From sequence record MZ574431.2: 64,000 nt of DNA. One strand, written 5' to 3'. Below, piece by piece: positions 36,260 through 44,508 of the stretch. A model generated the notes under the pieces. The model had not been told where the DNA came from. It did no database searches and was given only the letters and a program-made list of their open reading frames with translations. Position 1 is the first letter of the stretch, and the number at the start of each line of letters is the position of its first letter. A program made the position numbers and the translations under genes.

Positions 36260-36394
36260 ATGAGCACCACCACCGACGCCCTGGGCGCCAAGGCCGAGAC
36301 CGCCATCGGCAAGGCCGCCGCCTGGGTCCAGGCCCACACCACCATGGTGCTGGTCTTCATCCTCGGCTTCGCCGCCGGCGTCCTGTTCGTCTGA
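36260..36394 (+). CDS. small membrane protein (44 aa)
   Basis: C-terminal helix MVLVFILGFAAGVLFV. Confidence 0.65.
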   Translation: MSTTTDALGAKAETAIGKAAAWVQAHTTMVLVFILGFAAGVLFV

Positions 36395-36568
36395 TCCCGA
36401 CGCGGTCCCTGAAACGATAGGGGACCTCTGGCCGCGCCCTTTTGAAAAACGCCCGCGCGGGGGCGAGCCTGAGACCCTCCACCGTCTCCAGCCCTGGCTG
36501 CTTTTGAAACCTGATCGGTCGCCAGGGCGCCGGCCAGACCAACAATCCCACCCGACGGGAACATTCCG

Positions 36569-36805
36569 ATGACCTTCCATTACGACGCGCTCGACGAGTG
36601 CGTGAACTCGTGCGCGCCGGCTCCGACGATCTCGGTGGTGCGCGGCCTCTTCATCGACGACGGTGACAAGGCCCTGGGCAGCCCGCGCTTTGTCGCCTCC
36701 GAGGCTGGCCGCTTCATCGACATCACCACGCCGGCCTTCGAAGGCGTGCTGCATGAGGACGAGGCCTATCCGCTGCTCAAGCAACTGACGGCGGTGCTCC
36801 TGTGA
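36569..36805 (+). CDS. hypothetical protein
   Basis: GGGA SD, first of a coupled operon. Confidence 0.7.
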   Translation: MTFHYDALDECVNSCAPAPTISVVRGLFIDDGDKALGSPRFVASEAGRFIDITTPAFEGVLHEDEAYPLLKQLTAVLL

Positions 36806-37011
36806 GCCCCTTCATCACCCTGACCCTGGCGGTTGAATACGACGACGTCGAGGTGACGCTGAACGCCATCATGGTCGAGGCCTTCTTCGCCAGCGCCAGC
36901 ATCGCGGGCGTCACCGAGGTCCGCACCACGAGCGGCAAGGGCTACAACGTCCGTGAGACCTACGAGGTCGTCAAGGAGCGCGTGGCCGCCGGCCTGCGCT
37001 GGGAGGCGTAA
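36802..37011 (+). CDS. FlbD/SwrD-like small protein 1
   Basis: ITLT..VTLNAIMVEAF..T.V.T.SGKGYNVRETYEVVKERVAA parallels the SwrD family pattern. Confidence 0.6.
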   Translation: MSPFITLTLAVEYDDVEVTLNAIMVEAFFASASIAGVTEVRTTSGKGYNVRETYEVVKERVAAGLRWEA

Positions 37012-37017
37012 AGCCCC

Positions 37018-37275
37018 ATGTTCGTCAAGCTCACCCACGCCCATGGCAGCGAGGCCACCGAGGACCTCTACGTCAACCCGCTCAACATCATCGCGATCCG
37101 AGCCGACGGCGCCAACGCCCGGCTCTACGCGACCGATGGCGGCCTTTATCCGGTCGCCGAGAGCGCCGGCGACGTGGCCGAGGTCTTCGCCCAGGCGCTC
37201 GACACCAACCGTGAAAGCAACGACGCCATGCAGACGCTGCTGTCGCTGTTCGTCCAGAGGAGCCCCGCGTCGTGA
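37018..37275 (+). CDS. FlbD/SwrD-like small protein 2
   Basis: MFVKLT..G..LYVNPLNIIAI..L..TDGGLYPVAESAGDV. Confidence 0.55.
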   Translation: MFVKLTHAHGSEATEDLYVNPLNIIAIRADGANARLYATDGGLYPVAESAGDVAEVFAQALDTNRESNDAMQTLLSLFVQRSPAS

Positions 37276-37610
37276 TCATCCTGCATCGCAAGCACCCGGT
37301 CGGCGGCGGCCAGTTCACCATCCAGCGCATCGCCATTCGACCGAGCGCCCTGGACTTGATCATCGAGACCGCCCCCGACGCCCCGGCCACCATCGAAGTC
37401 AGCGGCGACCGCTATGACGTCGTCGAGACCTTCGAGCAGATCACCGGCCTGATCGGCTGCTGGAAGCACAGCGACATCCTGATCAGGGGTCACGCCCTGG
37501 CCAAGGGCGAATCGCTCCAGGACTTCCATCTGGCCGGCATCGAGTACGAGCCCGGCGCCGCTGAGAAGCACGAAGAGATGGTTCTGGTCTTGAACCCCTG
37601 GACCGAATGA
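37272..37610 (+). CDS. FlbD/SwrD-like small protein 3
   Basis: IAIRPSALDLIIETAPD..TIEVSGDRYDVVETFEQITGLI. Confidence 0.5.
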   Translation: MIILHRKHPVGGGQFTIQRIAIRPSALDLIIETAPDAPATIEVSGDRYDVVETFEQITGLIGCWKHSDILIRGHALAKGESLQDFHLAGIEYEPGAAEKHEEMVLVLNPWTE

Positions 37611-37882
37611 TCGTCGTTCACTGCCATTTCGCGCCCAACGAGGCGATCTTCCTCCACCCCGAGCGGATCACCAAGTTGCACAAGCCCTCGACCACGCAAC
37701 TGTGGGTCGAAGGCTATGAGTGCTGCCTTCAGATCAAGGAGACCCCCGAACAGGTCGCCAAGCTCTGCGCGGCCTGGGCCGATCGCTGGCGGTGGGAAGA
37801 CTTCAACAACGCAACCGCCAACTACGCCGTCTTCGACAAGGAAGCCGGCGTGGTGGTCTTCAACTTCAGCGAAAGACCCTGA
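37607..37882 (+). CDS. FlbD/SwrD-like small protein 4
   Basis: IFLHPERITKL..STTQLWV..LQIKETPEQVAKL. Confidence 0.5.
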   Translation: MIVVHCHFAPNEAIFLHPERITKLHKPSTTQLWVEGYECCLQIKETPEQVAKLCAAWADRWRWEDFNNATANYAVFDKEAGVVVFNFSERP

Positions 37883-38130
37883 TGAGCAAGCACACCGACA
37901 GCCTCATGGCTGACTGCCAGAAGCTGGTCGCCCTGACCGAGAAGATCACCGAGGCCTCCGACGGCCTGCGCGACCTGATCGTCCAGATTCCGAGGAGCCG
38001 CGAGGGCGCCCTGGCCCTGACCAAGCTCGACGAGTTGGACTACTGGGCCGGCCGCGCCATGCGCGAAATCCTCGAACCGATCCTGGGCGAGCTTCAGGAA
38101 GCCGGCCTCGTCAAGATCACCGAAGCCTAA
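37882..38130 (+). CDS. Acb2/Tad1-like helical hairpin protein
   Basis: PRSREGALALTKLDELDYWAGRAM resembles the SRE.(S/A).A.TK.EEA..W motif of these sponge families. Confidence 0.5.
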   Translation: MSKHTDSLMADCQKLVALTEKITEASDGLRDLIVQIPRSREGALALTKLDELDYWAGRAMREILEPILGELQEAGLVKITEA

Positions 38131-38188
38131 CTGGCCACATTTGGCCAGTTAGCCCCGGTTCTCCCTCACATCTGGCCACATTTGGCCA
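38131..38188. repeat. 2 x CTGGCCACATTTGGCCA
   Basis: 38131-38147 and 38172-38188, intergenic. Confidence 0.9.
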
Positions 38189-38214
38189 CTTAAGCCTAAG
38201 CCAAAGACCACGCT

Positions 38215-40543: not shown

Positions 40544-40744
40544 ATGACCTCTCCGACCCTCTCCCTGACCGTCTCGGGCGCCCGCAGCGCCGGCAAGACC
40601 GTCTTGATCCGCAAGATCGCCCAGTTCCTGCGCGAGCAGGGCTACACCGTCGACACCGAGCGCCTGCCGCGTGGGACCGACTACGCCTTCGACGGCGTCA
40701 AGGCCGACGGCCGCGCCGTCACCCTGTTCGAAGGCGGCCTCTGA
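40544..40744 (+). CDS. 66-aa protein with isolated Walker A motif
   Basis: LTVSGARSAGKTVLIRKIAQFL. Confidence 0.7.
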   Translation: MTSPTLSLTVSGARSAGKTVLIRKIAQFLREQGYTVDTERLPRGTDYAFDGVKADGRAVTLFEGGL

Positions 40745-43969: not shown

Positions 43970-44236
43970 ATGCCCGAGCAAGCCATCATCTGTCTCGACG
44001 ACGAGGCCCTCGACCAGGAGATCGCCGCCGCCGCCCAGGTGGAGACCTGCCCCTTCTGCTGCTCGACGCGCATCGAGGCGCCGATGGAAGGACACCCGTC
44101 CGGCTACGGCGCGATGATGCAGACCGGTCCGACCGTCTGCTTCGATTGCGAGGCCTACGAGATGTCGCACTGGCGCGACTATCCCGAGGCCACGCCCGAG
44201 GAGAAGCAAAAGGGCTGGATCAGGGGCACGGTCTGA
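43970..44236 (+). CDS. small Zn-ribbon-like protein
   Basis: CPFC...CFDC. Confidence 0.7.
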   Translation: MPEQAIICLDDEALDQEIAAAAQVETCPFCCSTRIEAPMEGHPSGYGAMMQTGPTVCFDCEAYEMSHWRDYPEATPEEKQKGWIRGTV

Positions 44237-44508
44237 TGAGCGCGCCGCTGATGATCGAATACAGCAACGCCCAGACGGGCTTGCGTGGCTTCATCTCGCC
44301 CGAGCATGTCATCCAGGCCTTCTGGAGCAACGGCCGGCGCTACATCGTCCTGGCCCACGACAAGTCGGCCATGGAGATCGACCAAGCCCCTGACGTGATC
44401 GCCGCCCTACGGCGCGTCGCTCTGCGGGGGACGGGCGGGCAGCCTCAAGACTACGCGGTTCGTTGGGACGGCCGCGCTGGAAACATCCGGTTCGTCGGCC
44501 CTCAGTAG
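44236..44508 (+). CDS. hypothetical protein, weak FlbD/SwrD-like pattern
   Basis: FISPEHVIQAF..YIVL..AMEIDQAPDVI; TGATG coupling. Confidence 0.6.
   Translation: MSAPLMIEYSNAQTGLRGFISPEHVIQAFWSNGRRYIVLAHDKSAMEIDQAPDVIAALRRVALRGTGGQPQDYAVRWDGRAGNIRFVGPQ

Follow-up and report, generated by a model that had tools for sequence, protein, structure and literature searches.

We analysed a 64,000-nucleotide (nt) stretch of DNA from sequence record MZ574431.2, hereafter called the window, and in particular a tandem array of four small genes, gp075 to gp078, whose products resemble the bacterial FlbD/SwrD proteins at the superfamily level. Positions 36500-38200 were 100% identical to the Caulobacter phages J4, RB23, C2, and BL47 and to one further Bertelyvirus record, while phage C1 and a second further record showed 99.9% identity; the coordinates of J4 are those of the window. 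J4 is a 312-kilobase (kb) member of the Dolichocephalovirinae, genus Bertelyvirus (a J4/RB23-type giant Caulobacter phage), and the source is therefore not phiCbK, the phage named by the first-pass annotation of this DNA. The four open reading frames (ORFs) that this annotation had pointed out were confirmed by the ORF list and by the J4 record, which annotates them as hypothetical proteins gp075-gp078, all on the + strand. The first, gp075 (36802-37011, +), overlaps the stop codon of gp074 by 4 nt and encodes an acidic protein of 69 amino acids (aa) with an isoelectric point (pI) of 4.6. It is followed by gp076 (37018-37275, +), which encodes another acidic protein (85 aa, pI 4.5) and is the most weakly linked member of the family. 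Next come gp077 (37272-37610, +), which overlaps gp076 by 4 nt and encodes 112 aa with a predicted SwrD-like N-terminal core at residues 1-65, and gp078 (37607-37882, +), the best conserved member, which overlaps gp077 by 4 nt and encodes 91 aa in a gp077-like two-part layout. The gene order is the portal gene gp072, two tiny ORFs, gp074, gp075-gp078, and gp079. Within the block from gp074 onward, consecutive genes share 4 nt or leave a 6-nt gap, and gp078 and gp079 overlap by 1 nt; such an arrangement is that of a single translationally coupled block.

Positional orthologs of gp076, gp077, and gp078 were present in the phages CcrSC and CcrBL9 at 27-50% identity, while no gp075 ortholog was found in either phage. 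A HMMER scan of 1.84 billion representative sequences returned one new ortholog, P0009, on the 9.6-kb Logan contig L005, which represents a fourth lineage and carries all four genes in the same order as J4. The L005 ortholog of gp075 is 135 aa long and 39% identical over the first 70 residues. For gp076, the positional orthologs (CcrSC gp083, CcrBL9 gp087, and L005 4502-4753) showed 27-31% identity; those of gp077 in the three lineages showed 38-47%, and those of gp078 showed 68% in L005 and 40-46% in CcrSC and CcrBL9. The gene order is thus kept in J4, L005, CcrSC, and CcrBL9, the latter two without gp075, at identities of 27-68%. This conservation of order at such divergence, together with a confident structure model described below, indicates that the genes are expressed and under constraint, and gp075-gp078 are real genes. 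Three long repeat proteins returned by the HMMER scan were rejected, as their scores were sums of weak matches.

Pairwise BLAST barely detected similarity among gp075-gp078. When the four subfamily alignments were compared by hhalign, all six pairs gave P values of 0.0033-0.052 in the same register each time (gp076 versus the gp075 family, P 0.005), whereas pairing with five families of neighbouring small proteins, about 30 control comparisons in all, gave P values of 0.046-0.95. Leave-one-out hidden Markov models (HMMs), searched against 500 window ORFs, placed gp075 at rank 1 and gp077 at rank 4, but were weak for gp078 (rank 16) and gp076 (rank 59). A weak tblastn match led to a tandem trio, gp068-gp070, in the phage CcrPW (genus Colossusvirus), which was scored by the gp078-family HMM at expectation values (E) of 3e-10 to 3e-5, and the phage CcrColossus has a copy of gp068 with 93% identity. 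Conversely, an HMM built from the CcrPW trio alone ranked gp078 (E 1e-9) first and gp077 (E 0.035) second among the 500 window ORFs, and an HMM of the gp077, gp078, and CcrPW members ranked gp076 and gp075, on which it had not been trained, third and fourth. Another tblastn match, in a Manatee Spring phage, was dropped because it lay inside a 158-aa protein. gp077, gp078, and CcrPW gp068-gp070 were alignable over their full length. In an 18-member family alignment, the second core column is Ile (14/18) or Val (4/18), and Pro (11/18) or Ala (7/18) stands three residues ahead of an Ile/Val position. The helix start reads Val/Ile-x-Glu-Thr/Ser (Val in 13 and Ile in 4 members, Glu in 14 of the 18, Thr in 9 and Ser in 4), and further conserved columns are Leu (13), Val or Ile (13 and 5), and Leu (12). 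Accordingly, the shared residue pattern that had been noticed in the tandem genes, and the tandem expansion of one family, were both substantiated. We regard gp077 and gp078 as paralogs with certainty, and gp075 and gp076 as their probable paralogs.

An additional ORF at 44236-44508 (+), encoding a basic protein (90 aa, pI 9.5) and unannotated in J4, had been proposed as a weak member. It aligned in register with the gp076 family (hhalign P 0.006), and it immediately precedes the HslV-like gene gp094 and follows, at a distance of two genes, a homolog of CcrPW gp066, thereby occupying the place that the array has in CcrPW; on the other hand, it ranked only 135th in the leave-one-out search. It was found only in the J4 group, and in sister records it lies under annotated features. 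We consider it a possible, though uncertain, divergent fifth member.

The family was found in only two genera: Bertelyvirus, with seven near-identical J4-type records, CcrSC, CcrBL9, and contig L005 as carriers, and Colossusvirus, with CcrPW and CcrColossus. No relative was detected, at the sensitivity of a pattern scan, in IMG/VR beyond the known phages, in 185,579 GTDB species genomes, or in JGI metagenomes. The array occupies different genomic places in the two genera. In Bertelyvirus a distance of 0.7 kb separates it from the portal gene upstream, and it shares its strand with the genes that come next, a position that would suit head-assembly or virion-associated proteins of the structural module. 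However, the Colossusvirus copies have neighbours with the annotations HD phosphatase, DHH phosphoesterase, and HslV-family peptidase, and the 9 kb inspected there include no annotated portal gene; the candidate fifth copy of J4 adjoins an HslV-like gene; and no structural-protein family in Pfam or PHROG was matched. We therefore hold a structural role to be highly unlikely.

The relationship to FlbD/SwrD was examined by a Pfam scan of the 18 family members against 24,736 models, in which PF06289, the family of FlbD/SwrD, has a gathering cut-off of 24.7 bits. PF06289 was the top Pfam family for gp075 (E 0.0079, 16.2 bits, residues 17-63 on profile positions 11-53 of 59), for CcrPW gp068 (E 0.02, 14.9 bits, residues 1-56 on profile 1-50), and for CcrPW gp070 (E 0.016, 15.2 bits, residues 1-35 on profile 1-34). 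The two CcrPW matches begin at residue 1 of both the protein and the profile. Because E values of 0.008-0.02 were obtained over 24,736 models, the P value for PF06289 alone would be below 1e-6. gp075 gave no BLAST alignment with CcrPW gp068 or gp070 even at E 100, and no match to PF06289 occurred among about 20 neighbouring proteins. Furthermore, weak matches to PHROG 8458 ('flagellar protein') were obtained from all four subfamilies, namely with gp075 (E 0.066), gp077 (E 0.3), and, in CcrSC, gp083 (the gp076 ortholog, E 0.12) and gp085 (the gp078 ortholog, E 0.022), the two CcrSC matches covering nearly equal spans (residues 12-57 and 12-53 on profile 27-71 and 27-67). The first-pass annotation had assigned the array to the small PF06289-type FlbD/SwrD family, as distinct from the sigma-54 activator FlbD, and had described gp075 as closely paralleling SwrD. 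As a remote relationship this assignment stands. The close parallel was overstated, with gp075 at 16.2 bits and gp076, gp077, and gp078 giving no PF06289 match, and the scores, all under the gathering cut-off, do not support membership of the Pfam family itself. The likeness to FlbD/SwrD thus holds at the superfamily level only.

Other sequence searches were negative: NCBIfam gave no match for the family, no PDB sequence, SwrD chains included, was matched by gp075 or by two profiles, and word-indexed protein searches that started from gp075 or from two family alignments recovered nothing beyond the proteins of these phages themselves. CcrSC gp083 (L002 4217-4456) matched PHROG 7594 over nearly its whole length (E 2.7e-6), while J4 gp076 did not; PHROG 7594 may be a bridge family toward PHROG 8458.

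The AlphaFold2 model of gp077 had a mean predicted local distance difference test score (pLDDT) of 86.7 and a predicted template modeling score of 0.78, and the pLDDT reached 94-96 over residues 1-60. The modelled core consists of strands at residues 2-11 and 14-22, a helical turn at 24-26, strands at 27-31, 38-43, and 46-53, and a helix at 54-65, and it is followed by an extension of a helix (67-78) and two strands (85-92 and 103-109). In SwrD, Nair et al. described an antiparallel pair of strands, followed by a 3-10 turn, another three strands, and a helix at the end (PMC13740483), and the order of elements in the gp077 model matches this published core topology exactly. A Foldseek search of gp077 against BFVD returned many phage proteins of 60-90 aa (probability 0.9-1.0, E 0.014-0.4), and five of the best 50 (ranks 11, 15, 18, 39, and 47) were named 'Flagellar and swarming motility protein'. 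In contrast, the poor gp075 model (pLDDT 44.5), used as a control, gave no FlbD-named matches and probabilities of at most 0.6. The FlbD-named BFVD proteins and those of PHROG 8458 are likewise encoded by phages, are 60-90 aa long, and share the predicted fold with gp077 (for the BFVD proteins, Foldseek probability 0.94-1.0 and a template modeling (TM) score of 0.45-0.77 on the target). However, they differ in sequence (12-24% identity), and neither tandem arrays nor extra C-terminal elements were seen among them.

We compared the phage family with SwrD residue by residue, using Pfam coordinates and the published residue numbers (PMC13740483). SwrD proteins form a hexameric ring from cross-subunit sheets, and the hexamer is held together by a pore Asn within an Asn15-x3-Leu/Ile19 pore turn that is conserved in all of them; further features are Glu23, a Pro-Asp-Thr loop between strands 3 and 4, and a highly charged disordered C-terminal tail (PMC13740483). 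The phage proteins share with SwrD/FlbD of Bacillus subtilis and Borrelia burgdorferi the size and the core topology. Their Pro/Ala-x-x-Ile/Val turn sits where SwrD has its pore turn, the Ile/Val position being kept in 17 of the 18 members (Ile 13, Val 4), and a Glu-Thr/Ser group stands at the helix start as in SwrD. On the other hand, no conserved column corresponds to Glu23 or to the Pro-Asp-Thr loop; J4 gp077 has Pro-Asp-Ala at the loop, but its orthologs do not. The charged disordered tail is also absent, and gp077 has in its place the modelled helix and two strands (pLDDT 62-89), with which gp078 can be aligned, while gp075 ends a few residues past the core helix. Finally, the phage genes are tandem paralogs in a block after the portal gene, whereas SwrD is encoded by a single gene in a flagellar operon.

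Several observations weigh against a kinship with SwrD. All three PF06289 scores are under the cut-off, 15 of the 18 members, including the L005 ortholog of gp075, have no PF06289 match, and a family profile searched against the 1.84 billion representatives had no FlbD protein among its matches with E ≤ 0.001. Only three of the 18 members (J4 gp075, its L005 ortholog, and J4 gp076) have the pore Asn, which is replaced by Arg, His, Asp, Ser, Gln, or Ala in the others. In addition, gp077 provided the sole usable model, which was built from a nine-sequence alignment, and its Foldseek search against the PDB (entries to April 2026) gave nothing significant (E 0.8-4.2) and did not return the SwrD entries. 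These subthreshold external matches, the nonsignificant PDB folds, and the failure of the leave-one-out HMMs for gp076 and gp078 would all be expected if the FlbD likeness were due to chance and the four proteins were unrelated short orphans sharing a strand-turn-strand-helix pattern. Nevertheless, the same Pfam and PHROG families recur in members that cannot be aligned with one another and in no neighbour, the confident gp077 model has the published SwrD topology, and the FlbD-named BFVD matches are enriched for the good model and not for the poor one. Chance resemblance is therefore very improbable in our judgment.

The best 50 PDB fold matches were led by PH-like domains and included six LytTR domains. 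Best hits to such folds had been named in the first-pass annotation as evidence against a SwrD-like protein, and both folds did appear, although none significantly (E at least 0.8). SwrD has LytTR, RemA, ComK, and DUF903 as its structural neighbours (PMC13740483), and the six LytTR domains fit this published likeness; since LytTR is such a neighbour and no match was significant, the comparison speaks neither for nor against SwrD. The LytTR matches (AgrA) had E values of at least 1.9 and TM scores of 0.28-0.38, and the PH-like matches a best E of 0.8 and TM scores of 0.25-0.35; the order of elements also differs from that of PH-like domains, because a helix lies between strands 5 and 6. RemA and DUF903 were not among the best 50 PDB matches. 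Seventeen family members have pI values of 4.1-6.3, and the phage proteins lack the basic DNA-binding elements of LytTR and RemA, so their acidity argues against DNA binding of the LytTR or RemA type. The signal peptide and lipobox of DUF903/YgdR are absent as well.

Taking these results together, we propose, with slightly better than even confidence, that gp075-gp078 are oligomerising acidic scaffolds of the SwrD fold, encoded by anciently duplicated and co-expressed paralogs, that bind a host or phage partner. The four proteins would belong to a branch of the SwrD/FlbD fold superfamily that is known only from giant Caulobacter phages; its common core would consist of two strands, then a short helical turn, a further three strands, and a helix, to which gp077 and gp078 would add a helix and two strands. 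By analogy with SwrD and its relatives, the first hairpin of one subunit may pair with the three-stranded sheet of the next subunit, and such pairing could generate homo- or hetero-oligomers, possibly rings. Being small, acidic, and presumably cytoplasmic, the proteins most likely act during infection as protein-binding scaffolds on a partner from the host or the phage.

The partner might be the flagellar motor of Caulobacter. The proteins would then bind the stator, the C-ring, or FliL and tune or stop rotation, which could limit further flagellum-dependent adsorption. SwrD, the sole functionally studied relative, affects motor power (PMC13740483), and the family is known from giant Caulobacter phages only. 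The window also contains five CtrA-box-like TTAA-N7-TTAA sites versus 0.02 expected; they lie at 2244, 3298, 3349, 15970, and 19585, all in the first 20 kb, in agreement with the CtrA-site clustering published for CbK-like phages (PMC9437464). However, PF06289 annotations occur mainly in Bacillota, Actinomycetota, and Spirochaetota, and the contact between SwrD and MotA has not been confirmed biochemically (PMC13740483). The residues and the charged tail specific to SwrD are missing from the phage proteins, no CtrA box lies near the array, and the Colossusvirus array is located among genes with annotations as nucleotide-metabolism enzymes and an HslV-family peptidase. Moreover, Foldseek found the same fold in BFVD phages of Mycobacterium, Gordonia, Rhodococcus, Klebsiella, and Cellulophaga, hosts that are not known to have flagella. 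We thus consider a motor-directed function rather unlikely, and the specific model in which a hetero-oligomeric SwrD-like ring attaches to the flagellar motor of Caulobacter once the cell is infected and alters how the motor rotates is, in our estimate, quite unlikely. As a separate observation, no consensus promoter was found near the array.

The gene that closes the block, gp079 (37882-38130, +), encodes an 82-aa helical protein outside the family. Together with its orthologs (four proteins in all), it matched Pfam PF24729 (Acb2/Tad1 hairpin) with E values between 1.6e-4 and 9e-4, short of the 27-bit cut-off, and a profile of the gp079 family searched against the PDB matched 'Acb2 homolog 43' at an E value of 0.062 and 'Thoeris anti-defense 1' at one of 1.7. 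Judging from these sequence matches, gp079 is a candidate cyclic-nucleotide sponge, and its likeness to Acb2/Tad1 hints at a counter-defence setting. On this basis gp074-gp079 might constitute a counter-defence or host-takeover cassette, in which the four SwrD-like proteins would be sponges or decoys for host immune components. Such a role would be consistent with the 1-nt overlap that joins gp079 to the array, with its Acb2/Tad1 hairpin matches in four lineages and to a solved Acb2 homolog, with the nature of the array products as small, acidic, fast-evolving tandem paralogs, and with the different genomic places of the array in the two genera. The gp079 matches are themselves below the cut-off, however, and no neighbour of the CcrPW array is annotated as Acb2-like, although no scan aimed at Acb2 was made there. 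We regard the cassette as an improbable explanation.

At the other end of the block, gp074 (36569-36805, +; 78 aa), which opens the tightly packed genes and is not a family member, is 70-93% identical in CcrSC, CcrBL9, and L005 and had no match in Pfam or PHROG. Upstream of it lies a conserved non-coding stretch (36395-36568), a possible regulatory element of the block. Its mean column identity over four lineages is 75%, above that of the flanking genes, with a 23-nt invariant run and a hairpin whose pairing is kept by two compensatory changes; no Rfam match was obtained for it. The sequence CTTTTGAAA occurs in two copies within this stretch and nowhere else in the window. Further upstream, a 44-aa ORF at 36260-36394 (+) with one hydrophobic helix is unannotated in J4, but carries an annotation in CcrSC, CcrBL9, and L005, where its identity is 75-81%. 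Between this small membrane ORF and the gp074 homolog, CcrSC, CcrBL9, and L005 have a gene of 76-82 aa (L002 3555-3803, L003 3556-3801, and L005 3440-3670) that is absent from J4. Elsewhere in the window, J4 gp083 (40544-40744, +; 66 aa) weakly matched numerous P-loop NTPase families along residues 6-39 and resembles either an isolated Walker A fragment or an NTP-binding protein of very small size.

The structure of SwrD was first described in 2026. We found no paper on phage-borne SwrD relatives, which are known only as automatic annotations; the array described here is a clean case of a SwrD-type family with conserved tandem paralogs and an added sub-domain, in phages whose relatives locate their host via the flagellum. 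If the motor does turn out to be their partner, these proteins would be the first viral regulators known for the rotary motor and would provide a handle on how SwrD works. If the partner is another one, the SwrD ring scaffold would have been reused by phages for different ends, and the case would be a warning against the 'flagellar protein' label that has spread through phage annotation.

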